From contig NC_082713.1 in the NCBI RefSeq assembly GCF_030144855.1, positions 163,990,001-164,054,000 of the forward strand: a stretch of DNA of 64,000 bases, read 5' to 3'. The stretch comes from Hypanus sabinus (Eukaryota). A program made the position numbers and the translations under genes. Shown here in pieces: positions 100 to 57,814 of the stretch (positions are counted from its first letter, which is position 1; each line of letters starts with the position of its first letter). The notes below the pieces were generated by a model, which did no database searches, was not told where the DNA came from, and saw only the letters and a list, made by a program, of their open reading frames with translations.

Positions 100-3000
100 A
101 ATGAACAATAGAATAGAGGAACTAAAAATCTGCTGAAGACAGTAAATAGAAGTTAGAGCCAAAGGTGTAGTGTAGGCAGGATGGTAATTAAGGCAGTGAA
201 ATGCTCCTCCTGGAAGTTGTGGGATTGCAGGGTACATAATGATCTCTCTGATGACCAAGTGCACACAACTTCAGCTCCTGACTGACAAGGTTAAGGAATT
301 GGAACTGGAGCTGAGTCTACTACCTGCTGGCTGAGTCTTTTACTGAGGTAGTCACACCCAGAGTTCAGGCTTCAGATAGTAGATGCAGAAGTAAAGAGAG
401 TCGATAGTTAGTGCAGGGTTTTCCCGGTGGCCATACCCCTCGGCAACAAGTATACCACTTTGGATACTGCTGGTGGAGGAAGTTGAGCGATCAGAGCACA
501 ATAACAGCCAGGCCAGTGGATCTGTGGCCAGCTCTGCAGCTCAGCAGGGAAGGGTCAGAAAGGGTGACTGCGATAGGAGACTCGGTAGTTAGGAAGATGG
601 ACAAGAAACCCTGTGGCTGCAAAAAAAAAGATGCCAGGATATCATGCTGCCTCTCAGGTTCTAGGGTCAAGGATGTCTCAAAATGGCTGCAGAATATTCT
701 CAAGATGGAGGGTCAGCAGCCAGTGGTTATGGCACATATTGGTACCAATGTCACAGGTAGAAAAGGGGAGTGCAGCGAGCATAGGGAGCTAGGGAAGAGA
801 CTGGAGAGCTGGACCTCCAGTGTAGTAATCTCCGGATTACTTCCTGAGCCATGTGCTAGTCAGGACAGGAATAGGATGATAGTACAGATGAACGAGTGTT
901 TGAGGATCTGGTGCAGGGGGCTGGGTTTCAGGGGTGTGGAACTTTGAGATATCTTCAGGGGAAGGTATGACCTGTGTAAAAAGAAAGGTTTATATCTGAT
1001 GTAGAAGATGTTGAATCCTTGTGAGCAGAGATAAGAAATTGCAAGGGTAAAAGACCCTGATGGGAGATAGAAATGGCATGTAAAAAAAGGCAGGGTTAGG
1101 ACAGTCATGGGGGATCTCAATACGTAGGTAGATTGGGTAAATCAGGTTGGGGCTGGAACCTAAGAGAGGAAATTTGTAGAACCGCTACAAGATGGCTTTT
1201 GAAAACTGCTTGTGGCTGAGCAGACTAGGGGAATGGCAATTCTGAATTGTGTGATACATATTTGATTAGTGGGCTTCAGGTAAAGGAACCTTTAGGAGGC
1301 AGTGATCATAATAATAGAATTCACCCTGCAGTTTGAGAGGGAGAAGATAAAGTCAAATGCCTCAGCAGTATTACAGGAGAGTGAGCATGAGAGAGCATGA
1401 GAGAGCAGCTGGTCAAAGTTTTGAATTTACAAAATGTAACAGAATGCAGAGCACCAATGGTTGGAGTTTCTGGAGGTAATTCGGAAGGCACAGGAGAGAA
1501 ACATCCCAAAGATGAAGAAGGTGAGGCAACCATGGCTGACAAGGGAAGTCAAAGACAGCATAAAAGGCGTATAATGCAGCAAAAATTAGTGGGTAGGTAG
1601 AGGACTGGAAAAGGTGTAAAAATCAACAGAAGGCAAACTAAAAAATCCATAAAGAGAGAAAAGGTGAAATATGAAGTAAGCTAGCCAAAGCATAAAAGAG
1701 GATACAAAAAGTTTTTTTCAGGTAAACAAAAAGTGAAAAGAGAAATGAGATTGGATAGCAGACCACTGGAAAATGATGCTGGACAAAGTAATAGTGGAGG
1801 AACTAAATAGATGTTTTGTGTCAGTCTTCATAGCAGAATGCCAGAAATGCGAGAATGTCAGGGGACAGAAGAGAGTGTTGCTGCTATTACAAAGGAGAAG
1901 GTGCTTGGGAAACTGAAAGGTCTGAAGGTAGACAGGTCACCTGGACCAGATGAGTTACACTGCAAAGTTCTGCGAGAAGTAACTGAAGAGATTGTGGAGG
2001 CATTAGTTATAATCTTTCAAGAATCGCTAGATTCAGGAATGGTTACAGAGGACTGTTTGAGGGACAGAGCTAAAGATGGCTTTAGCCGACTTCTCCTGGC
2101 CCATCTGGGAAACAGTTTAACTTCTTCTTCTTTCCAATGCCTCTTCTTTCCTTTTGAGGATAGCTGGGTATGTTGGAGAGTGCGACCTACAACTGCAGAT
2201 CTTCATGTAGGTGGGTTTTCATTCTTGGAGCTTGCCGATCGGCCATGTTCTGCTGTCTCCAGGAGTGGCCTGGAAGTAGGACACCTTTCAGCTGTGGCCC
2301 TGCAGCCCTGTGGAACCAATTTCTTGCTGATGTCACCAACTGAGGCATCGCGGGAGATCAGGGCATGGAGACAGCAGGGCAGCTGTCGGAGAACCCTCCA
2401 CTTGAGCAACCTCTCCTTCTCCCTCGCTGTAGATTCTCGAGTGGGAGGAAACTCGACATGAAAGCGGCGCTGCAGACTGTAACATTGAAGCAGTGAGGTG
2501 TTTGTCTCCCCCTCACTGTGGAAGGAGCGATATCTCTTTCCCCCTTGTTACTGAGAGACATACTATGGTATGTCAGATTGTTGGGATGACTGTTGACCAT
2601 GGTCTCTTTTTGAGAGCTTTGCTGTTTGCATGGTGAGGTGCATGTGCTTCCTGTTGAAATGAGGGGGGAGGGTTGATGGTTTTGCTGCCAATTGTACTTG
2701 GGAGTGGGGAGTAGGAGCTTGGTGGATCTAACATCTTTTCTGTCATTCATTCTTTGGGTTTTTTCCTGTTTCGTGGATGTCTGTGGAGAGTAAGAATTTC
2801 AGGATGACTATTTTATACATTCTCTGATATTAGGCAGAACCATTGAATCATTGACTAGAAAATTACACATATCACTCCACTCTTTTAGTATTATGAGAGG
2901 CAGAAGTAAGGAAATTATAGGCCAGTTAGTGATTGGGAAGATGTTGGAGTCTATTATAAAGAATGAGGTCTCTGAGTACTTGGATGAAATAGACCTGGTT

Positions 3001-3105
3001 TCAGCATGGTTTCCTTAAGGGGAAGTCTTGCCTGACAAATCTTTTGGAGTTCTTTGAGGAAATAACAAGCAGGACTAAAAAAGGAAAGTCAGCGGATGTT
3101 GTGTA
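100..3105 (+). mobile_element. Degraded CR1 LINE: ORF1 (SGNH esterase) remnant plus ORF2 endonuclease/RT fragments, interrupted at ~2056-2852
   Basis: ORF 411-947 has the IGDSVVR and HIGTN SGNH-esterase motifs typical of CR1 ORF1. ORF 1811 has KLKGLKVDRSPGPDELH..VLREV, and QHGFLKGKSCLTNLLEFFEE is readable near 3002-3062. Many stops and frameshifts. Confidence 0.85.
2056..2852 (+). mobile_element. Unclassified non-LTR/SINE-like insertion inside the CR1
   Basis: CR1 text breaks after ...gaggactg and resumes at ctagaaaattac. The insert ends in a short tandem tail (accattgaatcattga), like LINE 3' ends elsewhere in the window. Confidence 0.55.
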
Positions 3106-6100
3106 GTTGAATTGAATTGACTTTATTTCTTGCATCCTTCACATACATGAGGAGTAAAAATCTTTACGTTATGTCCAAATGTGCAATATGCAATCACAGT
3201 AATTTATAGTAATTTATAATAAATAGAACAGTTAATGTAACATAGAATACGCTCAAGTCAGCGTGAGTTAATCAGTCTGATGGGCTGGTGGAAGAAGTTG
3301 TCCCAGAGCCTGTTGATCCTGGCTTTTATGCTGTGGTACCGTTTCCTGGATGCTAGCAGCTCGGATAGATTGGGGTCTGGGGTGACTTGGATCCCCAAAG
3401 ATCCTTCGGGTCCTTTTTTCACACCCGTCTTTGTAAATGTCCTGAATCATGGGAAGTTCACAACTACAGATGTGCTGGGATGTCCGCACCACTCTCTGCA
3501 GAGTCCTGCGATCAAGGGAGAAACAGTTCCCATACCATAATCTGGTAAATTGGATCAGTGAACTTGCTGATGATACAGATATTGGAGGTGTAGTGGACAG
3601 TGAGGAAGGTTTTCAAAGCTTGCAGAGGGATTTGGACCAGCTGGAAAAATGGGCTGACAAATGGCAGATGGAGTTTAATGCAGACAAGTGTGAGGTATTG
3701 CACTTTGGAAGGACAAACCAAGGTAGAACGTATAAGGTAAGTGGAAGGACACTGAGGAGTGCAGTAGAACAGAGGGATCTGGGAATACAGATACAAAATT
3801 CCCTAAAAGTGGCATCACAAGTAGATAGGGTCATAAAGAGAGCTTTTGGCACATTGGCCTTTATAAATCAAAGTATTGAGGATAAGAGTTGGAATGTTAT
3901 GGTGAGGTTGCATAAGACATTAGTGAGGCCGAATTTGGAGTATTGTGTGCAGTTTTGGTCACCTAATTACAGGAAGAATATTAATAAGGTTGAAAGAGTG
4001 CAGAGAAGGTTTACAAGGCTGTTGCCCGGACTTGAGAGACTGAGTTACAGAGAAAGGTTGAATAGGTTAAGACTTTATTCCCTGAAGCATAGAAGAATGA
4101 GAGGAGATTTGATAGAGGTATATAAAATTATGATGGGTATAGATAGAGTGAATGCAAGCAGGCTGTTTTCACAGAGGCTAGGGGAGAAAAAAAGCAGAGG
4201 ACATGGGTTAAGGGTGAAAAAGGAAAAGTTTAAAGGGAACATTAGGGGGAACTTCTTCACACAGAGAGTGGTGGGAGTATGGAATGAGCTGCCAGTTGAA
4301 GCGGTGAATGCAGGCTCACTTTTAACATTTAAGAAAAGCTTGGACAGGTACATAGATGAGAGGTGTATGGAGGGATATGGTCCAGGTGCAGGTCAGTGGG
4401 ACCAGGCAGAAAAATGGTTCAGCACAGCCAAGAAGGGCCAAAAGGCCTGTTTCTGTGCTGTAATGTTCTATGGTTTTATGGCTCTACCAGGCAGTGATGC
4501 AGCCAGTCAGGATGCTCTCAATTGTGCCCCTGTAGAAAGTTCTTAGGATTTGGGGCCTATACCAAACTTCCTCAACTGTCTGAGGTGAAAGAGGTGTTGT
4601 CATGCCTTTTTCACCACACAGCTGGTGTGCACAGACCACGTGAGGTCCTCAGTTGTTTATCTTTTCAACCCCAGATCCATTGATGTGAATAGGGGCTGAC
4701 TCCATTCTTCCTGTAATCCACAACCAGCTCCTTTGTTTTCGCGACGTTGAGGGAGAGGTTGTTTTCTTGACACCACTGTGTCAGAGAGGTGACTTCTTCC
4801 CTGTAGGCCACCTCGTTATTGTTTGAGATTAGGACAATTAATGTAGTGTCATTGGCAAAATTAATTAGCAGATTGGGGCTGTGGATGGTGACATAGTCAT
4901 GGGTATACAGGAAGTAAAGGAGGGGACTCAGTACACAGCCCTGAGGGGCTCCTGTATTGAGTGTCAGAAGGTTGGAGGTGAGGGAGCCCACTCTTACCAC
5001 CAGCTGGCGATCTGATAGGAAGTCCAGGATCCAGCTGCACAAGGCAGAGTCAAGGCCAAGGTCTCTGTTTCCTGTCGAGCCTGAATGGAATTATGGTGTT
5101 GAATGCTGAACTGTAGTCCAAGAACAGAATTCTCACATTAGCATCCTTCTTCTCCAGATGTGTAAGAGCAGTGTGTTGAGCTGTGGCTATTGTGTCATCT
5201 GTCAGTCGGTTGTGTCGGGAGGTGAATTGTAGGGGGTCCAGTGTGGGTGGTAGCAAGCTGCAGATGTAATCCTTGACCAGCCTCTCAAAGCATTTGCTTA
5301 TTATTGAGGTGAGTGTGACTGGACGCCAGTCATTCAGACATGTTACCTTGGTCTTTTTAGGTATAGGGACAATGGTGGATAATTTGAAGCAGGAGGGCAC
5401 TCTACACTGGGAGAGGGAGAGATTAAAAATGTCTGTAAACACACCTGCCAGTGGTGCTGCTCACATCCTGAGAACTCACCTTAGGATGCCGTCCAGTCCC
5501 ACGGCCTTGCGACTGTCCACTCGTTGGAAACAACTGTGTACCTCAGCCTCAGAGATGACCAGGTTGCAGGTTGTGGTGGTGGCTTTCCTCGGAGGCTCAG
5601 AGTTAGCGACATCGAACTGAGCGTAAAAGCGATTGAGCTCATCTGGGAGAGAGGCCGCGATGTTGGCGGCACCGCTACGTTTGGCTTGGAAGTCTACGAT
5701 GTAGCCCTCGCCACAAGGCACGTGTGCTATTCGTTATGAATCTTGACTCAATCTTGTCCCTGTCTTATTGTTTCACAGCCTTGATAGCTTTGCGCAGATT
5801 GTATTGGCTTTTCTTGAGCTCCTGCTGATTGCCGGCAGCGTAAGCTCTATGTCAGTGCTGCTCACACGGAACTATTGATCCAGGGTTTCTGGTTCGGGAA
5901 GACCCTGACTGACATCAGGGAGACATCATCAATGCACTTTCTGGGTGAAGCACGCGACTCCATCTGTGAACTCAGAGACATCCTCATCGTGGAAGACATT
6001 CCAGTCGACGTCCTCGAAGCAGTCCTGCAGCATGGAGTCCGATTGGTCGGACCAACAGTGGACGGTTTTAACTAGGGCCGCCTCTTGTTTCAGCTTCTGC

Positions 6101-6445
6101 CTGAAAGTCGGCAGAAGCAGGATCGAAGAGTGATCCGATTTTCCAAAAGCTGGGCGAAGGAGAGCTTTGTAAGCGTTGTGGAATGACGTGTAGCAGTGGC
6201 CAAGTGTGTTATCTCCATGAGTGCTCACCTGGATGTGCTGACAAAACTTCAGAGAGACTGTCATCAGCAATGCTCGATTAAAGTCACTGGCAACAATGAA
6301 GGCGGCCTCTGGGGGTGCAGTCTCCAGCGTGTTGATGGATTCTTACAGTTCCTAGAGAGCTAGGTCAGTATCAGCCTGTGGCAGAATGTACACAATATGC
6401 TGATAACAGCAGTGAACTCCCTAAGCAGCCAGTAGGGTCTTCACA
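3106..6445 (-). mobile_element. Rex1/Babar-type LINE, large degraded copy (endonuclease + RT + 3' tail)
   Basis: Minus-strand ORFs contain [54 protein letters not shown] and AFGKSDHSSILL. A (TCAAT)n tail lies at ~3106-3121. Confidence 0.85.
3538..4484 (+). mobile_element. Young 5'-truncated CR1 LINE (RT C-terminus + 3'UTR) nested in Rex1
   Basis: Stop-free frame ADDTDIGG...QMEFNADKCEVLHFG...RPNLEYCVQFWSP...NFFTQRVV. Tail ttctatggttttatggctc. Flanked by TACCA (3533-3537, 4485-4489). Confidence 0.9.
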
Positions 6446-6668
6446 GCTGTAGAAGTACAGCCAAGTGATCAGACTTTCTGAAATGAGGGCATGGAATAGC
6501 ACGGTAGGCATTCCTGATGGTGGTGTAACAATGTCCAGTGTGTTGTTTCCTCTGGTGCTACAAGTGATTGGTTGCTGATAATTGTTTAGCGACTTTTTCA
6601 AGTTGGCCTGGTTAATATCCCTCAAGATGATGGTGAAGGTGTCAGAATGTGCTGTTTCATGCATGTTG
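6446..6668 (-). mobile_element. Endonuclease fragment of a second Rex1-like family
   Basis: ORF 6371-6664 contains QANLKKSLNNYQQPITCSTRGNNTLD, paralogous to the STHGDNTLGHCY segment in ORF 5929-6270. Confidence 0.6.
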
Positions 6669-6940
6669 ACACAGCCTCAGAATAGAGGGGAATCCATCTA
6701 GAACAGAGATGAAGAAACATTTCTTTAGCCAGATTCTGGTAAATATGTGGAATTCATTGCCACAACAGCTGTGCAGGTCATTGGAACTTGACAGGTTCTT
6801 GATTAATCACGGCGTTAAATGTTACAGGGAGAAGGCAGGACATTGGGGTTGAGAGGAGTAATAAATCAGCCATGATGGAATGGCAGAGCAGACTTGATGG
6901 GCTGAATGGCCTAATTCTGCTCCTACGTCTTATGGTCTTA
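6669..6940 (+). mobile_element. CR1 3' end
   Basis: acagcctcagaatagagggg...ttctttagccag...gatgggctgaatggcctaattctgctcct, the same family 3' end as at ~21020-21305. Confidence 0.8.
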
Positions 6941-7120
6941 AAGTTGATCCTTATCCTTCTAAGGCAGGTCAAAAGCCTATCTTGGACAAGGTAAGTACAA
7001 TATGACGCACGTTTACCTCACATCAGGACAGACTTTCTCTGAACAAAACAAAATTCTGTAGCTGGGTCTTGCTTTAACGGCACCAAAGGATATTTGGCCT
7101 CTCGTGGTCAGAACAAATTA

Positions 7121-7139
7121 CAGCCACTAGAGGGAGTGC
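7121..7139 (+). promoter_or_regulatory. Candidate CTCF site
   Basis: CAGCCACTAGAGGGAGTGC closely matches the CTCF core CCASYAGRKGGCR and lies in an apparently non-repeat stretch. Confidence 0.35.
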
Positions 7140-7289
7140 TCTCACAACCTGAATTGCTTCTGTTCCAACATTCAACTGTTAAGTGCTCTGATTTATTCCC
7201 CTTGCGGCTGATCGTTGGCCTCTCAGAGATTTTGACCAAACCCACTGACAAGCAGCTGAATACAACTTTACAGTCAAGGCACATTTGGA

Positions 7290-7730
7290 ATATTGTCAGT
7301 TCTTGTCACAGAAGGAATGTGGTTACTTTAGAGATGATACAGAAAAGATTAACCCCGATGTTGTCAGGATTGAAATGCATAAGCTATAAAGAGGTTGGAC
7401 AAACTTGGATTGTTTTCTACAGACTGAGGGGCAACCTAATGGGAGTATATAGGATCATGGAGGCTTAAATAGGGTGCATGGTCAGAGTCCTTTCTCCCAA
7501 CGTGGAAAAGCCATAGCTTGAAGGCGAAATGGGCAAAATTTAAGAGATTTACAAGGTAACTGCCTAGAACATCCTACCAGGGGAGGTGATAGAATCAGAT
7601 ATGATAATAATACTTAAGAGACATCTAGATGGATACTTGTATAGGCAGGAAATGGATAGAAGCCGACCATGCGGCAGCAGGTGATTGCACAGAAGTGATG
7701 GGCTGAATGGCCTGTTCCATTGCTGTACTT
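7290..7730 (+). mobile_element. Old CR1 3' fragment
   Basis: End of ORF 7094 reads LEMIQKRLTPMLSGL..SYKE...RLRGNLMGVYRIM, followed by a gatgggctgaatggcctg 3'UTR. Confidence 0.7.
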
Positions 7731-12409: not shown

Positions 12410-12600
12410 TTACACATCATAAATGCTGGAATAAGTCAGCAGATCAAGAAGCATCTATGGAGAAGAATAAAGAGCTGCCATTTCTGGCCAAGACCCTTCA
12501 TCAGGACTGCAAAGGACAGGGGAAGAAGCCAGAATAAGAATGTGGGGAGAGCTGAAGAAATACAAGCTGGAAGGTAAGAGGTACAACTAGATGAGGGGAA
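12410..12600 (-). mobile_element. Penelope-like element 3'/pLTR fragment with degenerate hammerhead motif
   Basis: The minus strand reads cagtcCTGATGAagggtcttggccaGAAAtg, the same family as 17881 and 30775. Confidence 0.6.
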
Positions 12601-12983
12601 ATATTTTAAATTGACATTTGGAGTAGACCTGGAGATGCCTTCAGTGAAGAGGTGTGTTAGCTTTTCACTATGAGTGCATTAGATGAGATTACTTTCCACA
12701 CACTGGATGAATGACTCAAAGGCATTATACATAGTAATAATCCAAGAAAGTAAATTCTTTCTCTTTGAATGGAAAGTTAATGATTCAGCCAGTTCATATC
12801 ATCTTGATAGTGCAACAGATCCATAATTCAAAACAGCATTCGGAGTAGATGTGGGGCCTGGCAAGTACAACTACCCAGACCTCCTTTTAATTTACAAAGA
12901 GCACATTGACTTTAACTGCACTGGGTAGTTTTACATTATTACTACAGCCATTTATATTTTGATTAAGGGCAGCACTTACTGTG

Positions 12984-13593
12984 ACAGGTCTCAACTAAAT
13001 TACCTGTGTATTACTCATTGTGTAATATGATTACGGACAGTGTGGTTATTGCAGTTTCTTTGCATTAATGTATAAAGATTATACAGTAAGCAGAGTGGAA
13101 AAGTAACCTGAGCTGTATTGAAGCTTTTAAATACTGCTTTCATCAGGTTGCAAAACAAAATTTATCTGGAAATCATAGCACTGGAAATTTATAAGGCATA
13201 ATGGATCCACACCAGGTGTCGAGTCAAGTTTTATTAACCCTTAGACTTCCCTTGTAAAATAAAGTAACTAAAATAAAGTAAAATAGAGTAATCACTCTCC
13301 ATAACTTTCTTTACACTTTCCCTTTATCATCCTACCTTTATCCCCCACCTCATTCCCATCCTCTTTACCTCAGCAACCATATCAGTGAGTTAACATTACG
13401 TCTCAGGAATGTGCCACATCTTAAAGTATGGAGCTGAAATGGCAGACTGAGCAATTATATGCAAATTAAATATTATATCTGCTAACTTTGATTAATGAGC
13501 TGACAATGCACTGGGCTTTATTAATCAGACAATTCGAAAGTTAAATTGAGAGTAGCTGGACAATAAATAAGACACTAACTGTGAGCTTACTAG
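12984..13593 (+). repeat. Left arm of long inverted duplication
   Basis: Reverse complement of 15398-16044. 13108-13195 matches 15833-15920 exactly (88 bp). Confidence 0.95.
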
Positions 13594-14546
13594 TCCAGAG
13601 CATGTTGTTAATGGAGAGGCACACAAAGTTGCCACAGCCTGTGTAATAGGTAGGACTTTACCTTTCCCTCATTAAGAAACATCTCTCAGGCCATTGTACT
13701 CCAGCATGGAGAGGGGACAAGCCAAACCTTCAATGTCATATCATATCATAAAATTAAAACAAGCTCCATCCACGAAACTTCAGACAAAATTTTATCACCC
13801 AGCTGCAAACTTAATAACTTAGCTGTGTGTCAAAGCGTTCAAACAACTAAATGTTCCTGGATACCAGTGATGTTCAAAAATGTGGAAAAAATATTTAAAA
13901 AGTATTGAAAATGTTCAAACTGTTAAAATGAAGAAAGCGTTTCAAAATACCTATGAATACTTTTAAACAACTTAAATGACTAAATAAATTCAAATACATT
14001 AAGTAGATTTAAATAGGGTAAGTGAAGAAAAGTAATTCAAGATAAGGAATGGTTCAAGATCTAAGGATACAAGTGTTAAATATTGGGCAAAAAGGTACAA
14101 GGTGAATGTGGGGTAAATCTGTCCTAGTTATAGTCTTAGTCATTGAGTTCAAAGCACAGAAACAGGTTCTTTAGCCCAACCAGTCTATGCTGTTCAAATC
14201 ATCTGGCTAATCCCATCTATCTGGATCCAGCCCATAGCTGTCTAAACCCCTTCCATCTATGTACTGCACCTATCCGGATCCTCTGTGCAGAGGAATAAAC
14301 AGTTGAGGTTTCAAGCTGAGGCCCTTCTCAGCCCAATACATTCACTGATTATTCCTTTCCATAGAAGCTTCCTGATCTGCTGAGTTCCTCCTGCATTTTG
14401 TGTGTATTTTTTTTCTTGGATTTCCTGCATCTGCAGTATCTCTTGTGTTCCTGTACCTAGCAGTTTGTTCCACACTCACACCACCTTCTGAGTGAAGAAC
14501 TTGCCCCTCAGGATTCCCTTAAGTATTTCATTTTTTAACCCTAAAC

Positions 14547-14626
14547 CGGGGTTCCCAACCATCTTTTATGCCACGGACCCATGCCATTAAGCAAGGGGTC
14601 CATGGACCCCAGGTTGGGAATCCCTT
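14547..14626 (+). mobile_element. 80-bp hAT (Buster/Charlie-type) MITE
   Basis: TIRs cggggttcccaacc / aggttgggaatccctt. 8-bp TSD ccctaaac (14539-14546) / ccctagac (14627-14634). Confidence 0.85.
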
Positions 14627-15397
14627 CCCTAGACCTGTGAGATCTACTACAGAGAGTAGTTAGAACCTGGAACTCTCTTCAGGGATGGTGGAAATAGAAT
14701 CAGTCAATGTCTTCAAAATAGAAGTGAATAAGGACTTGAAGGAGAATATTTTGCAGGACTATAGAGACAGCGAGGGTGAATGGAACTAACAACATTGTTC
14801 CACAAAGAGCTGGAATAGATTCAATAGGCTGACTGTCATTTTTTTTTCTGAACTACAATATTTCTATGATTCTAAAACAATATAAATCACCATATTATCA
14901 TTGTCCCTTTTGCACAACTTCATCCCATTGAAATGGATGGACTTCCTGGGTCTAATCTCAACAACCAGATTTCTCCACATAGAAGTTCAGAGTTTCCTGA
15001 GGTTCATCTTCCTCTGCCGCAGTCCAGTGTCAGCACCTTTGGGATATCACCAGAGAAAAGCAACCAGCAATTTCCCCTACATTTTCCGCTTTGAAACAAT
15101 GGCACTCGCTCACATTCCCCAGTCAAATATTGGACATTAATGCACCAACAGCAAATAGTTTTTACATTTATCTCACAACATCAAGAAAAATGTGAATAAC
15201 ATCATCTATGCATCATGTTGTTTATCTGCACGATATTGTTTGAAATGCAATTTTTTTAAAATTTAATAATTAACAGAACACATTCTGATGGGACTATTCA
15301 TGTTGTATTTACTAACTAAAATGTATTTTGTCTTTCTGTACTTTCACTTAGAAGAATGTTCTTCAAGGGATGGGATTAAGACCTGTTAGTTATTTAC

Positions 15398-16044
15398 CTA
15401 GCAACCCACAATAAGTATCTTACTTATAGTCCCCCACTCTCAATTTAACTTCCTAAGTATCTGATTAATACAGCCCAGCACACTGTCAGCTCATTAATCA
15501 AAGATATAAAATTTAATTTGCTGATAATTGCTCAGTCTGCCATTTCAACACTGTATTCTAAGACATGGCACATTCCTGAGATGCAATATTAACTCACTAT
15601 CACATTTGCTGAGGTAAAGAGGGTGGCAGTGGAGTGGGGGAAATAGTAGGAGGGTGAAGGGAAAATAAAAATAAAGTTATGTAAGGTAGTTACTGTAATT
15701 TACACGATTAATGCTTGATCAATCTTTCAATTTTGTCTCTTCTCCAGATGACTCAGAGGTCAAGTAAACTTATTTTACAGGGGAAGTCTAAGGGTTAAAC
15801 TTTGCACAACACCTGGCGTGGATCCATTATGTCTTATAAATTTCCAGTGCTATGATTTCCAGATAAATTTTGTTTTGCAACCTGATGAAAGCAGTATTTA
15901 AAAGCTTCAATACAGCTCAGATTACTTTTCCACTCTGCTTACTGTATAATCTTTACATATTAATGCAAAGAAACTGCAATAATCACACTGTCCATAATAA
16001 TATTACACAATGAGCAATACATGGGTAATTTAGATGAGACCTGT
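15398..16044 (-). repeat. Right arm of long inverted duplication
   Basis: Reverse complement of 12984-13593, with an extra segment at ~15700-15765 that has no counterpart in the left arm. Confidence 0.95.
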
Positions 16045-16389
16045 ATTATTTGGATTTAATGCCTGTTAGCCATAAGAATAGGATTGCGAGGCCTACTCAA
16101 GAACTTTTGCACAAGGTTTGGCTGTGCTGGCAGACATTAATGAGGGCAAGCAATATTAAAGCACTAGTCTAAGGATTTTTAAATATTTATGATTGGCTTT
16201 ACTGTCACATGTACATTGAAACACGGAAACACACAGTGAAATGTGTCATTTGTCCACAACTCACTAACTCTAACCTGTACATTTTCGAAATGTGGAAAGT
16301 TTGTTTAGTGTGCCGCAAATCAAAGCCAACCTGCTTGTTTCAGATGGATCTTTAAAATGCCATGTTGATAAAATATCTAATATTTCAAT

Positions 16390-17005
16390 AACACCAGAGA
16401 TTCTACAGATGTTTGAAATCCAGAGTAACACCTTCACAATTCTGGATGAACTCCGCAGGTCAGGCAACATCTATGGAGTGGAATAAATATCCATAGTTTC
16501 AGGCCGAGACCCTTTTTCTGGGCTAATATTTCAATTATTGATGACATTATGGTGCATGGGAATAAATGCTATGTAGAAAACATGAAAAGGAAATACATTT
16601 CTACACTTTCAGGAATGTATGCAGTCCCATAGTATGCCAGGTAAATACTTAAAGGAAATAATCTTTCCTTCCCCTTCCCCTTTCTTCTATTCCCCACTCT
16701 GGCCTCTTCCTGCTTCTCACCTCCATATCACCTCCCCCTTTGTTTGCACCTCCTTCTCTTTCTCCCATGGTCCACTCTCCTCTTCTGTCAGATTCTTTCC
16801 TTTCCAGCCCTTTATGTTTCCCACCCACCTGGCTTCACTTAACACCTTCTAGCTGTCCTCCTTCCCCTTCACCCAACTTCTTATTCAGGAATTTTCCCCT
16901 TTCCTGTCCAGTCCTGGAGAAGGCTTGGCCAGAAATGCCGATTGTTTATTCATTTCCATCGATGCTACTTGAGCTGCTGCGTTCCTCCAGCATTTTTGTG
17001 TGATT
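16390..17005. mobile_element. Inverted pair of Penelope-like pLTR fragments (- at ~16390-16520, + at ~16660-17005)
   Basis: ctggatgaactccgcaggtcaggcaacatctatgg is the inverse of tcgatgctacttgagctgctgcgttcctccagc. Both copies carry degenerate hammerhead text. Confidence 0.6.
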
Positions 17006-17246
17006 TGTTTTTAGGAAATAGTTACTTTTGTTATGGAGGGGAATAATCTGTCAATTTGTGTGCAGCAATGTCAGACAATGAGGCAAATACCCACCCAATC
17101 CAGTGTTAGTGATTATTAGTCAGTGGGACACCTTTCGCTAGTTATGAGATAGGGGGCAGAGGCTAGTTAACTCACACAAGAACCAGTCTTCAAATAAAAC
17201 CTCTTTAGATGTAACCTGGTCACAATCATCAAACAGACACCATTGC

Positions 17247-17461
17247 TGATGCACCATCAATAACTCACTCTGAGACGTAAAGGCGAGATATCGGCTTTTA
17301 TTGACTGGAAGAAGGAACCAGCAGTGAGTGACCACCATACTACATCCTGGAGACTGAGAGGCCGGGCCCAGGCTAAGATCGCCTTTATACAGGGGCCTGT
17401 GGGAGGAGCCACAGGAGCAGTCTGCAGGGGGCCTGTCCAGACAGGCATATAGTTCACCACA
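17247..17461 (-). mobile_element. Solo LTR (215 bp)
   Basis: TG...CA ends and a perfect 5-bp TSD ATTGC (17242-17246, 17462-17466). On the minus strand TATAAAG (17383-17389) precedes AATAAA (17297-17302). Confidence 0.9.
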
Positions 17462-17880
17462 ATTGCTAACATCATAGGGCTTCGGTTCACCATGAGAATC
17501 TGCATAAGATTTTGGCTTTGGAAACTGACAAGACAAACTCTTCTATTAATGCTTGAATGATACCTCATCAGACTAATGAGGTTAACTTAGATGGGCATCC
17601 TGGGGAGCATGGAAATGTTGGTTCGAAGGGCTTGTTTACATGGTGTGTTACTGTTCTGCCTTTCAGTTAATTGGTTTAATTTTACTATATGATTAAGCAT
17701 GTTCAGTTTTAATTCTGAACTGAGCAGTATCAGATCTGTATAAGGTCATTTCCTGTGCAGTCAGGAAGTGGTGAGTAAGAAAACACTTTGGCTGGCAAAA
17801 AGCCAGAGGTTTATGTTAGGACTAACAGATCTTTCTATCTAAAGCCATCCGACTGTTTCTTACTATCTCTTCTTTCAGTT

Positions 17881-18799: not shown

Positions 18800-21305
18800 C
18801 AAAGGTAAGGAACTGCTAGGGTAAAAAAAATAACCCTGATGGAAATGGTATACAGACCCCCAAACACTAGTAAGGATGTGGCCTACAAATTACAACAGGA
18901 GATAGAAAATGCATGCCAAAAAGACAATGTTATGATAGTTGTTGGGGGGTGGGGGGTGTGCTTCAACATGCAAGTAGATGTGAAAATCAGATTGTTGCTG
19001 AATTACAGGAGGGTGAATTTCTAGAGGGCTTACAAGATGGGTTTATAGAACAGCCCGAGTTTGAGTCCACCACAGGATCAGCTATTCTAGATTGAGTGTT
19101 AAGCAATGAACCAGAATTGCAGAGCTTAAGGAAAAATAACCCTGAGGGGTAAGTGATCATAATTTGATTGAATTCACCCTGAAACCTGAGAAGGCAAAGA
19201 TACAGTCAAATGTATCAGTATTAGAGCAAAGAGAAAGAGGTAAAGGGAATTACAGAGGCATGAGAAAGGAGCTGGCCAGAATTGATTGGAAAAGAACACT
19301 GGCAAGGATGATGGCAAAACATTATTGGCTGGATTTTTTGGAAGCAATTCGGAAGGCACAAGATATATGCATCTGAAAGAGGAAGAAGTATTCTAAAGGC
19401 AAAATGACACAACCATGACTAACAAAAGAAGTCAAAGCCAACACAAAAGCCAAAGATGGAGCATATAATAAAGTAAAAAATAGTGGAAAGTTAGAGGATT
19501 GGGAAGCTTTTAAAATCCAACAGGAGGCAGTTAAAAAAGTCATTAAGAAGGTAAAGATGGATGTCAGAAATATAGTAATGGGGGAGAACAAAATGGTGGA
19601 AAAAATGAACAAGTAATTAGCATCTGTCTTCACTATGGAAGACATTAGCAGTATGGTGGAAGTTCCAGGTTTGAAGGGTTCTCAAGTGTGTGAAGTTACC
19701 ATAACTGGAGAGAAAGTTCTTGAGAAACTGAAAAGCCTGAAGAGAGCTAAGTCACCTGGACCAGGTGTACACCCCAGAGTTCTGAAAGAGGTGGCTGGAA
19801 ACATCGAGAAGGAATGTGAATGCTCAAAAATCACTAGATTCTGGAAAGGTTTTGGAATATTGGAAAATTGAAGATATCACTCCACTCTTCAAGAAGGGAG
19901 AGATGCAAAAAAAAAAAAGGGGAAACTATAGGCTAGTTAGTCTGATCTCAGTGGTTGGGAAGATGTTGGAGTCAATGAATAAGAATGAGGTCTCAGGGTA
20001 CTTGGAGGCACATGATAAAATAGTCCATAGTCAGCATGGTTTCCTCAAGGGAAAATCTTGTCTGACAAATCTGGTGGAATTGTTTGATGAAATAACAAGT
20101 AGGATAGACAATGGAGAATTGATTGATGCTGTGTACTTAGATTTTCAGATGGTCTTTGACAATGTGCCACACATGAGGCTGCTTAACAAGCTACAAGTCC
20201 ATGGTATCACAGCAAAGATTCTAGCATGGATAAAGCAGTGGCTGATTAGCAGGTGGCAACGAGTGAGAATAAAGAGATCCTTTTCTGGCTGGCTGCCAGT
20301 GACTGGTGGTATTCCAACAGGGGTCTGTGCCATGACCAATTCTTTTTAAATTATATACTAATGAGTTGGATGATGGAATTGATGGCTTTGTTGCAAAGTT
20401 TGCAGATGATGTGAAGATAGCTGGAGGGGCAGGTAGTTCTGTGGAAGTCAAAGGGCTACAGAAGAACAGACAGATTAGGAGAATGGGCAAAGAAATGGCA
20501 GATGGAATTCAATGTTGTGAAGTGTATGGTCATGCACTTTGGTAGAAGAAACGAAAGGGTTGACTATTTTCTAAATGTTGAGAAAATACGAAAAAAACTG
20601 AGGTGTAAAGGGATTTGGGAGTCCTTGTGCAGGATTCCCTAAAGGTTAATTTGCAGGTTGAATGGTGAGGAAGGGAAATGCAATGTTAGCATTCATTTCA
20701 AGAGATCTCGAATATAAAAGCAAAGATGCAACGTTGAAACTTTATAAAGCACTGGTGAGGCCTCATGGAGTATTGTGAGCAGTTTGGGGCCCCTTATCTG
20801 AGAGAAAATGTGCTGAAACTGAAGAGGAGGTTCACAAAAATGATTCCAGGATTGAATAGTTTGTCAGATGAAAAGTGTTTGATGGCTCTAGGCCTGTATT
20901 CACTAGAATTCAGAAGAATGAGAGGTGATCTCATTGAAACCTATTGAATGGTAAAAGGCCTTGATAGAATGGATGTGGAGAGAATGTTTCCTATGACACG
21001 ACAGTCCAAGACCAAAGGACATAGCCTCAGAATAGAGGGCATCCATTTAAAATGAAGATGAGGAGGAATTTCTTTAGCCAGAGAGTGGTGAATTTATTGA
21101 ATTCCTTGCCACAGGGAGCGTTTGAGGCCAAATCTTTATGTATATTTAAGGCGAGGTTTATAGATCCTTGATTCTTCAGAGCACGAAGGGATACAGCTAG
21201 AAGGCAAGAGATTGGGACTCAGAGGAAAATTAGATCAGCCATGATGAAATGGCAGAGCAGACTCACTGGGCCAAATGCCCTAATTCTGCACTTCCATCTT
21301 GTCTT
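18800..21305 (+). mobile_element. CR1 LINE, most of ORF2 to the 3' end, degraded
   Basis: VYRPPN, SPGPGVHPRVLKEV, GNYRLVSLISVVGKMLES, QHGFLKGKSCLTNL, YLDFQ, FADD and EYCEQFGAPYLR, followed by a CR1 3'UTR. Confidence 0.9.
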
Positions 21306-30699: not shown

Positions 30700-31105
30700 T
30701 CAAGAGATTCTGCATGTTGGAAATCCAAAGCACCATACACAAAATGCTGGTCAGGCAGCATCCATGGAAATGAACAGTCAACATTTCAAGCCAAGATCCT
30801 TCTTCAGGACTGTAAAGGGATAAAAAGGTGGGTAGAGGAGAAGAAGGATAGCTAGAAGATGATAGCTGAAGCCAGATGAGTGGAAAAGGTAAAGGGCTGG
30901 AAATGAAGGAATCTGATAGGAAAGCAGAGTGGACCACAGGAGAAAGGGAGGGAGGAAAAGGAAGGCGAGGTGATAGGCAGGTGAGAAGAGTAAAGAGATC
31001 AGAGTGGGAAATAGAAGGAAAGGGTGGGGGAGGGATTTTTTTTACCAGAAGGAGAAATCGATGCTCATGTCATCAGGTTGGACTTAACCCCGACAAAATA
31101 TAAGG
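30700..31105 (-). mobile_element. Penelope-like element 3' end with hammerhead motif at 30775-30812
   Basis: The minus strand has the ...QPDDMSIDF ORF end, a pyrimidine-rich UTR, then CAGTC-CTGAAGA-...-GAAAT-GTT-GACTG. Confidence 0.65.
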
Positions 31106-55584: not shown

Positions 55585-56295
55585 GGATGGATAGGTAGAC
55601 AGATAGACAAATACTTTGTTGATCCCAGAGGAAACTACAGTGTCACAGTACCATTACAAGTTCGCAGCTATACAATATTAGAAGAGTAGAAAGAAGAATA
55701 AATTACCGCAAGCAGCCTAACAGGAGGGTCATCACTTCCCCTGCTATAGGTTATAGAGCTTCATGGCCGAGGTTAAAAATGGCCTCACATAGCACTCTTT
55801 GGAGCAGTGCAGTTGTCTTAATTTGTTACTGAAAGTGCTCTTCTGTTCAGCCAAGGTGGTATGCAGATGGTGAGAAATATTGTCCAGAATCGCCGAAGTT
55901 TTCCAAAGAGCCTTCTGTTCCACCACAGGCTCCACTGTGTCCATTTTGACTCCTATAACAGAGCCAGCCTTTCTAACACATTACTGAGCCCATTGGAATC
56001 ACCCATGTTGATGCCATTGCCCCAGCACAGCACTGTGTAGAAGATTATACTGATGACAACAGACTGGTAGAACATGTGAAAGAGAGGCTTGCATACTCCA
56101 AAGGACCTCAGTCCCCTCAGGAAGTAGAGGTGACACAGCCTCTGTGTTCGTGATGTGATCAAGTCTGTCGTCCAGGTGCACCCCCAGGTACTTGTAGGTC
56201 CTCGCCACATCAATGTCCTCCCCATCAATGGTAACAGGGTGCAGTTCCGGCTTAGTCTTCCTAAAGTCCATCACCATCTCCTTTGTCTTAGAGAT
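55585..56295 (-). mobile_element. Rex1/Babar 3' fragment of a related (TATC)-tailed family
   Basis: KTKEMVMDFRK, YKYLGVHLDDRL, LYFLRGLRSFGVC..MFYQSVV and SAMKLYN. Confidence 0.8.
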
Positions 56296-57814
56296 GTGAA
56301 TAGCCATATATAAACACCTATAAGTACAGCCAAATGAAACAGCGTTACTCTGGGGCCAAGGTACAAAACATAGTACCACCAGTCGTACACAGCATAAGGC
56401 ACAAATATCATATATAAGATAGTAAGCACATATAGAATAGCTGCAAAATACAATCACAAAAAGATTACAGTCCAAGTCCCTGAGTCTGTCAATGTTGCAG
56501 CACAATACAACTTGATTTCTGCTTAGTGAACATGGGGGTGGGGTTAGGTGGGGCCAGCACCAACCTTAGCTTTGGTGTTGCACCACACTGCTTCCAGTAC
56601 TCTGGTGGAGCTTCAGATCTTGGCTTGAGGCCTAGTTCTCGCTACAACTGAGGCAATACAAGTCCAGCACTGTCTGACCCCACCATTCATCAGTAAACCA
56701 ATGATATCAACTTGCAGCATTCCACACAACCAATGACCGACAGGGTCTCGCAAGCACAAGAAAAGCAATTAAGACGATCACTTGCTGTTGGACTGCGTAC
56801 CTCCATGCACTGATGCCTCTGTTGCAGGCTGTATCACAGTCTTCACCAAGTCTAGCTCCTTCAAGTTCTTTGCAAATGAGGAACTTGTTGATGAGGTAGG
56901 CCTGCAGTACTTCAAGTTCTTAATGTCCAGTGGAGTCTTACGCTTGTAAAGAATATATTTAAAAAAAGACAATAACATCTTTGGATCTTTGGTTGACCCC
57001 ATAGAAGTTGATGCATCTGAGCACGCCGATACGTTACTGTAAAATGTGATTGTTTTGGGATGCCCTCTTTTCTAGTAGATCCATTACCAGAAGTGAAAGG
57101 TAGAGGTTTATTCTTCATGGTTTTAGAGAGAGTGATTAGCTTTATTTGTCACATGTACATCAAAAAATCGTTTTGTGCCAATTCCATTTAAATCAGATCA
57201 GTTTTCAAGTGATACCACTTTATTTTCCAATGCACTTTGCCATCCACCCTATATGAACACAGTAAAAATCTATTTTTTAAAATTTATTTAGAGAGACAAT
57301 GCGAAACAGGCCCTTCTATCACAATGAGTCGTACCACTCAGTAATCCACCTGTTTAATCCTAGCCTAATTATGGGATAATTTATAATGATCAATTAACTT
57401 ACTAACTGGTGCATGTTTGGACTCTGGGTGGAAGCCCATGTGCTTATGGAAAGGGCATACAGGCAGCGTTAGAATTGAACTCCAAACTCCGATGCCCCGA
57501 GCAGTAAGAGAGCGTCACACTAACAGCTACGCTACCTTGGCGTCGATTTTATTATGAGTATAATAAGGATATTCTTGGAGATAATTGTTAGTTTAGTGAG
57601 CAGTCAACTGACACAGCACAGTTGAAAGATGATGCATGCTTTGGTCATTTGCAGTTGTTACTCAGCCTTGAGCTATAGCATTGTTTTTTATCCCCCGCTA
57701 TGCATAGGACTGACCATTGTCCAGACTGAGCAGGGTGATTCACATGCACAGAGATTCTTGCATGTTCTTCATTCTCATAACTGTCCACTGATAACCGCAT
57801 AGTGTTCAGTTCTA

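Follow-up and report, generated by a model that had tools for sequence, protein, structure and literature searches.

A short identity island in an old, single-copy inverted duplication upstream of a Kv3 channel gene of Hypanus sabinus, and its possible maintenance by arm-to-arm gene conversion

The 64-kb stretch of Hypanus sabinus DNA analysed here (the window) carries an old, local, single-copy inverted duplication upstream of a Kv3 potassium-channel gene. Its two arms are unevenly alike, and a kernel of 123 bp within their outer part stands out as an island of near-identity. We suggest, with a probability of about 0.5, that this island has been kept by arm-to-arm gene conversion within the old duplication. 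Conversion is the most likely cause of the uneven identity, judging from a contrast between the outer and inner parts of the arms when arm-to-arm differences are set against between-species differences. The features are listed in Table 1.

Table 1. Positions of the duplication, its parts and the inserted element within the window.
Feature	Positions	Strand	Description
Left arm	12984-13593	+	610 bp; repeat search, gapped local alignment, blastn
Right arm	15398-16044	-	647 bp, reverse complement of the left arm; repeat search, gapped local alignment, blastn
Spacer	13594-15397	.	1804 bp, without arm homology; no inverted match inside
Core, left copy	13048-13219	+	172 bp; 5 transitions vs 15809-15980
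Core, right copy	15809-15980	-	172 bp
Kernel, left copy	13073-13195	+	123 bp; maximum-likelihood low-divergence segment; sole mismatch at 13107
Kernel, right copy	15833-15955	-	123 bp
Private deletion site	13269-13277	+	about 60 bp; left arm of this genome only
TE block, high-copy	14128-14643	.	within the spacer, separate from the duplication; common to species A, G, H and N

The repeat search returned four inverted pairs, 12984-13231/15797-16044 (248 nt, 94% identity), 13336-13480/15502-15646 (81%), 13472-13553/15436-15517 (84%) and 13278-13345/15636-15703 (74%), which merge in a gapped local alignment into a single arm pair, 12984-13593 against 16044-15398. With blastn the whole arms align at 78% identity over 661 columns (E ~1e-164). 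The outer ends of the arms are sharp, the inner parts are 74-84% identical with indels, and the mismatches over the full arms divide 44:26 between transitions and transversions. The alignments thus bear out the initial annotation of this DNA, which had described the arms as reverse complements around a 1.8-kb spacer, with inner parts about 80% identical and interrupted by indels. The window is free of N.

A recount of the core confirmed the five mismatches, all transitions, that the initial annotation had reported (at 13070, 13072, 13107, 13196 and 13211), as well as an exact arm-to-arm run of 88 bp at 13108-13195. The excess of transitions, five out of five against the 44:26 of the whole arms, is not significant (P ~0.1). 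In contrast, the unevenness of identity along the arms is significant by every measure applied: mismatches occupy 5 of 172 core positions and 65 of 421 in the rest of the arms (Fisher p 4e-6), and permutation of the mismatch positions gives p 5e-5 for a 172-column window this clean and p 3.5e-4 for an exact run this long. The kernel has 1 mismatch in 123 positions, as against 69 in 470 elsewhere in the arms (permutation p <= 0.003), and its edges are abrupt, with four mismatches within 13220-13225 and an adjoining 4-nt indel. These tests uphold the earlier argument that uniform neutral decay cannot yield the observed identity profile.

The placement of contigs from four other species, designated A, G, H and N, establishes the age and copy number of the duplication. 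The left arm lies in the same flanks, at single-copy depth, in species G, H and N, and the right arm in the same flanks in A, H and N; contigs of all four species join arms to the same flanks and spacer, and those of species N, which is about 8% diverged from the window, run through both arms completely. In each of the four genomes (2.1-2.7 Gb) an arm is matched, at a likeness of at least 80%, by a single contig with a depth like that of the flanks, and true repeats in the same stretch exceed the arms in depth by 1e4-1e5-fold. Since the arms are present as single copies within matching flanks in four other species, the duplication must antedate those splits, that from species N included, and does not derive from independent insertions of a repeat. 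The view that the arms belong to no repeat family also stands in the window itself, where blastn found no other copy of them. One difference is specific to this genome: species A, G and N retain a further 61-65 nt at 13269-13277, matching the right arm at about 15707-15760, and at this left-arm deletion site a contig joint, 13277/15707, joins opposite strands.

The spacer has since received a high-copy insertion. Summed contig depth over the TE block is 1e3-7e5, compared with about 10-25 in single-copy sequence, and is weakly raised beyond it, to about 14900. Contigs of species A, G, H and N enter the block from both sides, and blastn finds further copies elsewhere in the window. The initial annotation had assigned roughly 0.8 kb of the spacer to transposable elements, which holds approximately, the measured extent being 0.5-0.75 kb. 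Since it is common to all four other species compared, the insertion is old. We also considered whether the duplication might be the remnant of a larger palindrome, given a 74% inverted pair at 12413-12604 and 16814-17002; this pair instead belongs to a high-copy family, with more copies at 14349-14406, 16438-16514 and 30751-30818, and the DNA between it and the arms has no homology.

The evidence that bears most directly on the cause of the uneven identity comes from a ratio test, in which the number of arm-to-arm differences was compared with the number of between-species differences in the outer and inner parts of the arms, for species G and H. Constraint that acts site by site and does not vary over time affects the two counts in proportion and therefore cannot shift their ratio, whereas the ratio can shift if the two outer arms share a more recent common ancestor. 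Among the differences listed, the outer left arm (13033-13269) shows 13 arm-to-arm and 13 between-species differences for species G, as against 32 and 8 in the inner left arm (13287-13460; one-sided p 0.011 for the contrast). For species H the corresponding counts, again among the differences listed, are 8 and 14 in the outer right arm (15720-15891) and 52 and about 23 in the inner right arm (15398-15703), with p 0.006, or 0.028 once scaled for gapped columns. The two species combined give p ~0.003, on small counts from the differences listed. By these counts arm-to-arm differences are no more numerous than between-species ones in the outer arm and 2-4 times as numerous in the inner arm. In the region compared with species G the arms differ by 5.6% in the outer part and by 19% further in. 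The outer left arm of this species differs from the window by 5.5%, equal to its background of 5.7%; because it diverges at the background rate, no constraint is visible there. Between-species divergence of the spacer is likewise at the background level.

The exact arm-to-arm run differs in length from lineage to lineage. In species A the kernel is represented by one 123-bp contig, at a depth of 38 compared with 17-20 in its neighbours, and this doubled depth implies that both arms are identical there; the adjoining contigs extend 30 nt beyond 13196/15832 and 15956. The exact arm-to-arm run is thus 123 bp in species A and 88 bp in this genome, and contig ends at the homologues of 13123/15905, together with 15891, imply a run of about 73 bp in species H. 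The left-arm changes private to this genome are at 13107, 13211 and 13222, and the mismatch at 13107 is a derived state of its left arm. With two of these changes inside the 172-bp core, and a background of about 1%, substitution there has run at approximately the neutral rate for that branch.

These observations could be accommodated as follows. A local inverted duplication arose before the divergence of the species compared, probably by a fold-back or template-switch repair event, its arms of about 610-650 bp enclosing a spacer of originally some 1.1-1.3 kb. Most of each arm has since drifted to about 80-88% identity, while the outer 250-290 bp, and the kernel above all, would have been brought back into agreement by non-reciprocal conversion, with one arm serving as the template for repair of the other, probably repeatedly and in short tracts. 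Conversion requires near-identical sequence and would therefore recur where identity is already highest, which may explain the nested tiers of about 99% in the kernel, 89% in its shoulders and 80-85% in the inner arm. A modest additional slowing of the kernel between species may come on top. A low-divergence segment of 123 bp with abrupt edges fits the length of short conversion tracts. Running counter to conversion, the 123-250 bp of near-identity are short for recombination to be efficient. The GC content of the core (0.33-0.34) is not above that of the inner arms (0.35-0.37), so that no signature of GC-biased conversion is seen.

The closest known counterparts of such a process are the palindromes of mammalian sex chromosomes, which are held alike by arm-to-arm gene conversion (PMC8600007, PMC8327919, PMC8981503, bioRxiv 10.1101/800185). 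Like them, the duplication has inverted arms around a unique spacer, occupies an orthologous place in several species, and shows arm identity above that expected from its age, here in part of the arm; in both cases the process proposed is repair within the chromosome, non-reciprocal and templated by the other arm. The differences are of scale and content. Sex-chromosome palindrome arms exceed 8-10 kb, are more than 99% identical over their full length, carry testis-expressed genes and undergo GC-biased conversion (PMC8600007, PMC8327919, PMC8981503, bioRxiv 10.1101/800185), whereas the arms described here are 0.6 kb long and non-coding, with 123-250 bp kept alike and the rest at about 80%; identity of 99% is confined to the 123 bp, and the GC content of the core is not raised.

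The initial annotation had offered selection on both copies and conversion as alternatives. The contrast between outer and inner arm in the ratio test supports conversion more directly; selection on both copies, the less probable alternative, draws on the slow change of the kernel between species. Under selection, the kernel or core would have a non-coding function, most plausibly in cis-regulation of the Kv3 gene, and after being copied by the duplication would have been kept by purifying selection in both copies while the rest of the arms decayed, a reading that we regard as a serious candidate but a rather doubtful one. The first exon of the Kv3 (KCNC) channel starts at 38354, which places the duplication 22.3-25.4 kb upstream, in agreement with the 22-25 kb originally given for a gene putatively assigned to KCNC2. 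The core is non-coding, as had been noted for the arms: the only frame open in both arms is 47-48 aa long, changes 4 residues for 6 nucleotide differences, and has no Pfam match and no homologue. In size (120-170 bp) and GC content (0.33) the candidate element resembles typical vertebrate conserved non-coding elements.

In favour of selection is the slow change of this region between species. Between species A and the window the kernel shows no difference in 123 positions, and the right outer arm together with 241 bp of unduplicated flank differs at 3 of 453, compared with 2.9% elsewhere (p 0.003); the adjoining unduplicated right flank alone differs by 0.8%, against the background of 2.9%. 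Over the four arm lineages since the split of A and the window, neutral evolution should have left 5-7 changes in the kernel, compared with the 1 observed (P 0.005-0.04). Core 31-mers are found more often than stretch-average words in 12 of the 12 organisms with both shares listed, the share in species H being 0.60 compared with 0.09, and species H seems to retain an exact arm-to-arm run at the same place. This excess of core words is in part trivial, as every word can match in either arm, and a segment collapsed to double coverage is easier to assemble from thin data. Conversion acting with neutral evolution would leave between-species divergence unlowered, and the 123-bp kernel may therefore also be under some constraint or lie in a local cold spot for mutation.

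Several observations are hard to reconcile with steady selection. The outer/inner contrast in the ratio test is one that steady constraint cannot produce, the outer arm of species G evolves at the background rate, and the left core of the window has gained its private substitutions at about the neutral rate. Core words are few in species N (2 of 15), F (3), and J and K (4 each). At least one core 31-mer occurs in 20 sequencing runs from 15 related organisms, among the runs searched, and since the matches are limited to these related organisms, the core is no ultraconserved vertebrate element at the 31-mer level. An orthologue protein search and a metagenome pattern scan were blank, in collections other than vertebrate genomes, and therefore have no bearing on conservation. 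Strong constraint on both of two redundant enhancer copies is, moreover, rarer than loss of one of them.

Duplicated conserved non-coding elements provide the natural comparison (CONDOR database, PMC2020477; retention of elements after duplication, PMC1896008). As in those cases, a non-coding segment of 120-170 bp is present twice, is more alike than its surroundings and lies near a neuronal gene. The elements described mostly flank paralogues produced by whole-genome duplication, and their conservation extends from fish to mammals (PMC2020477, PMC1896008), whereas the pair described here consists of local inverted copies at a distance of 2.6 kb, conserved among about 15 related organisms, and its rate tests do not readily fit steady constraint. 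A broader version, in which the core is a functional element (a Kv3.2 cis-regulatory module or a regulatory dsRNA stem) selected in two copies clade-wide in cartilaginous fishes, with conversion keeping the copies matched, strikes us as tentative and somewhat unlikely.

Uneven identity could also reflect a two-step origin, with the outer part duplicated, or duplicated again, after the inner part, or a mutational cold spot in the kernel combined with faster change in a CT-rich inner arm. The lowest identity (72-77%) and numerous indels do coincide with a CT-rich low-complexity tract at 13290-13370, and the unduplicated right flank is likewise slow between species A and the window. However, the inner arm outside this tract is still only 83-93% alike, compared with 99% in the kernel, and a later partial re-duplication exactly in register is mechanistically equivalent to gene conversion. 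We consider this explanation improbable.

Yet another proposal is that transcription through both arms yields a long hairpin RNA with a functional stem of about 250 bp, serving as a source of endo-siRNA (hpRNA) or as an ADAR substrate, with selection acting on the pairing. Loci of this kind consist of long inverted repeats, as in the hpRNA loci of flies and the endo-siRNA sources of mouse oocytes, and are usually young and target a parental gene. The geometry is similar, in that a long, spacer-interrupted inverted repeat could form several hundred bp of dsRNA stem; if transcribed, the stem would measure 248 nt and be 94% complementary, with a near-perfect centre of 172 nt, and the five core transitions are able to give G:U wobbles. 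Unlike in those loci, the wobbles follow no consistent strand: the + transcript would have 2 G:U and 3 A:C pairs and the - transcript 3 G:U and 2 A:C, a near-even split that favours neither strand. Between species, selection on pairing would not preserve the likeness of the kernel in the absence of compensatory changes, of which none are observed. None of the Rfam families passes its threshold, and no word of the stretch occurs in the RNA runs searched, which as few and small runs constitute weak evidence. The hairpin proposed in the initial annotation thus gains no positive support, and we judge it very unlikely. As for structured RNA within a single arm, fold z-scores range from -1.4 to +0.5, and the sole Rfam match, SNORA81 (RF01241, an H/ACA snoRNA), concerns the left arm only, at 22.8 bits (E 0.49), half its gathering score of 45.

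Finally, we hold it to be scarcely credible that the arms represent the terminal inverted repeats of a DNA transposon or two separate insertions from a single family of repeats: the inverted geometry with sharp outer ends does resemble that of long-TIR DNA transposons and MITEs, and the surrounding genome is rich in transposable elements, but there is no target-site duplication at 12984/16044 (one 3-nt chance match occurs at shifted offsets), the arms are single-copy in five genomes, where real repeats reach depths of 1e3-7e5, frame and homologue searches found no transposase-like frame or transposase remnant in the spacer, and a family older than about 20% divergence, which would escape the copy test, could not explain a 99% kernel.

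If the selected-element reading were true, a neuronal potassium-channel gene would have a duplicated regulatory element kept in two copies. If arm-to-arm conversion is the correct explanation, the locus would be a small, autosomal-style counterpart of the giant sex-chromosome palindromes, in which an inverted duplicate of 0.6 kb can hold a short identity island while the remaining arms lose 15-20%. High-identity or seemingly conserved patches in old duplicates would then need not imply function. Under either conversion or selection, the locus is a compact test case.

The inverted duplication reported in the initial annotation was recovered by a repeat search of the window, by gapped alignment and by blastn. 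The repeat search returned an outer inverted pair and three further inner pairs (74-84% identity), which gapped alignment joins into a single arm pair, 12984-13593 versus 16044-15398, scored by blastn at 78% identity across 661 columns (E about 1e-164). The counts claimed for the core of about 170 bp are exact: five mismatches (13070, 13072, 13107, 13196 and 13211), all transitions, and an uninterrupted 88-bp run. Identity is also uneven beyond chance, as had been proposed, with mismatches at 5/172 in the core versus 65/421 in the rest of the arms (Fisher p 4e-6) and mismatch-position permutation giving p 5e-5 for the cleanest 172-column window and p 3.5e-4 for the longest exact run. A two-rate segmentation isolates a kernel with 1/123 mismatches versus 69/470 elsewhere, and three tiers can be distinguished: the kernel at about 99%, its shoulders at about 89%, and the inner arm at 72-93% with indels.

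Features of the inverted repeat and its surroundings (positions within the window; left / right arm where paired)
Feature	Position	Strand	Observation
Left arm	12984-13593		
Right arm	15398-16044		reverse complement of left arm
Outer inverted pair	12984-13231 / 15797-16044		248 nt, 94%
Core	13048-13219 / 15809-15980		172 bp
Exact run	13108-13195		88 bp
Kernel	13073-13195 / 15833-15955		123 bp
Shoulders	12984-13072, 13196-13269		
Outer left arm, species G	13033-13269		arm-to-arm 13 : between-species 13
Inner left arm, species G	13287-13460		arm-to-arm 32 : between-species 8
Outer right arm, species H	15720-15891		arm-to-arm 8 : between-species 14
Inner right arm, species H	15398-15703		arm-to-arm 52 : between-species about 23
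SNORA81 (H/ACA snoRNA) match	13012-13157	+	weak, full-length, left arm only; 22.8 bits (gathering 45), E 0.49
Spacer repeat block	14128-14643		composite, high-copy; summed depth up to 7e5 in each of four species
MITE-like unit in spacer block	14548-14624		77 bp; 13-nt inverted ends GGGGTTCCCAACC ... GGTTGGGAATCCC
Contig breaks	14349, 14405, 14564, 14620-14625		hundreds of contigs per species
High-copy repeat shortly to the right of the right arm	16192-16430		includes copy 16438-16514
Other copies of the 16438-16514 family	12413-12604, 14349-14406, 16814-17002, 30751-31035		
GC-rich island	17150-17600		about 1.1 kb right of repeat; GC 0.48-0.50 (window 0.40)
Open frame in island	17138-17536	-	132 aa
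Kv3-family (KCNC) first coding exon	38354-38800	+	BTB_2/T1 domain, E 4.5e-28; best PDB match Kv3.1, E 3e-69
Reverse-transcriptase-like, LINE-type frames	411-7468, 19816-20349, 44876-46717, 55999-56505		many frames; translations judged by eye
LINE-type retroelement debris	left 12 kb		most of the segment, judged by eye

Contigs of four other species, here A, H, G and N, were placed on 12580-16430 at divergences of roughly 2.5%, 8%, 6% and 8%, respectively. In G, H and N they connect the left arm with the left flank and spacer seen in H. sabinus, in A, H and N they connect the right arm with its right flank, and in N two long contigs cover both arms. Since these flanks agree across species, the duplication predates every one of the splits, and so does the TE insertion in its spacer. 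A number of the differences between the arms are young and lineage-private: among the differing places listed, the H. sabinus left arm carries the derived state at 13107, 13211 (a CpG site) and 13222; it alone has lost about 60 bp at 13269/13277, which A, G and N retain; and in the right arm, H. sabinus and A share a 4-nt loss at 15796 that H and N lack. The left core carries 2 private substitutions in 172 bp, about neutral for the branch (about 1%).

To weigh conversion and constraint we compared arm-to-arm (paralogous) with between-species (orthologous) differences over identical columns. Steady site-specific constraint scales both counts alike, so that their ratio should everywhere equal duplication age over speciation age. 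Instead, the ratio is lower in the outer than in the inner arm in G (one-sided Fisher p 0.011) and in H (p 0.006, or 0.028 scaled for gapped columns), with a combined p of about 0.003 on small counts; the outer arm of G diverges from the window by 5.5%, against a G background of 5.7%. We infer from the lower ratio that the outer arms go back to a more recent common ancestor than the inner arms do, as gene conversion produces. Of the two causes originally offered for the clean core, conversion thus gains from the test, and steady selection by itself is disfavored. We give gene conversion between the arms a probability of about 50%, and all the data agree with conversion in a kernel that is itself somewhat slow.

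A k=31 assembler breaks contigs where both arms turn identical, so contig ends serve as a second line of evidence. One 123-bp contig of A coincides exactly with 15833-15955, at double depth (38 versus 17-20) and with 0 differences, and the contigs next to it end 30 nt past 13196/15832 and 15956; the arms of A are thus identical across the same 123 bp, with bounding differences common to A and H. sabinus. In H, contig ends at 13123 and its homologous point 15905, together with one at 15891, imply that about 73 bp within the kernel match exactly between the arms, while contigs of N run through both arms, which implies arms without a common 31-mer. This assembly behavior suggests that kernel identity varies by lineage.

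A selected duplicated element, for which duplicated CNEs are the nearest match (PMC2020477, PMC1896008), is a possible but less probable explanation. Consistent with constraint, the kernel shows 0/123 differences between A and the window, and 1 change against 5-7 expected across the four arm lineages since that split; A differs at 3/453 positions across the right outer arm plus unduplicated flank versus 2.9% elsewhere (p 0.003); and core 31-mers occur more often than the average word of the stretch does in each of the 12 organisms with both shares listed. However, part of this signal, though not all, is trivial, since each word has two target arms and a collapsed double-coverage segment assembles better in thin data; shallow local coalescence between close species is possibly a partial cause; and the ratio test is at odds with steady constraint as the sole cause. 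Moreover, any core 31-mer occurs in only 20 of the runs searched, from 15 related organisms, so at 31-mer stringency the core is no ultraconserved vertebrate element. The segment 15926-16285, which combines the right outer arm with 241 bp of right flank outside the duplication, lies 0.8% from A versus 2.9% for the rest of the stretch; evolution may be locally slow here, or coalescence shallow, past the limits of the duplication. The Kv3-family exon start at 38354 confirms the earlier placement of the repeat 22-25 kb upstream; the N-terminus looks like Kv3.2, the candidate paralogue.

That a two-step origin or mutational heterogeneity produced the uneven identity is improbable in our estimation. 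A hairpin RNA, whose one point in favor is the inverted geometry, is very unlikely: no RNA run in the thin RNA data contains the sequence, the core transitions would give 2 G:U and 3 A:C on one strand and 3 G:U and 2 A:C on the opposite one, and 5/5 transitions is not significant against 44:26 arm-wide. Folding of single arms was not better than that of shuffled sequences, and an Rfam search of the arms returned SNORA81 only, a sub-threshold match most likely due to chance. No Pfam match was found in open frames of arms and spacer, and the sole frame open in both arms, considered as a coding exon, shows the behavior of non-coding sequence, and no homologue of it was found.

Least credible is a transposon with the arms as terminal inverted repeats, given the lack of a target-site duplication at 12984/16044 and the single-copy depth in all four species, where each arm is covered by one contig at unique-flank depth (about 5-25, versus summed depths of 1e3-7e5 over the spacer block and 1e3-5e4 over 16192-16430). 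Arm homology ends sharply at the outer and inner ends, and blastn found no further arm copies within the 64-kb window. The arms are accordingly single-copy and significantly uneven, and not the high-copy repeat or transposon termini with chance heterogeneity that the initial annotation had named as the contrary case. A larger original palindrome via 12413-12604 / 16814-17002 was rejected, this 74% inverted pair being unrelated and part of a high-copy family that also occurs elsewhere in the window.

The inverted repeat is a known kind of structure, correctly observed, and the inverted duplication probably had a repair-born origin of the ordinary sort. Sex-chromosome palindromes, with arm-to-arm conversion, are the nearest known system (PMC8600007, PMC8327919, PMC8981503). 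The locus resembles them in geometry, cross-species persistence and proposed mechanism, but falls short of their size and whole-arm identity. By this analogy, the H. sabinus repeat would work like the sex-chromosome palindromes without belonging to them.
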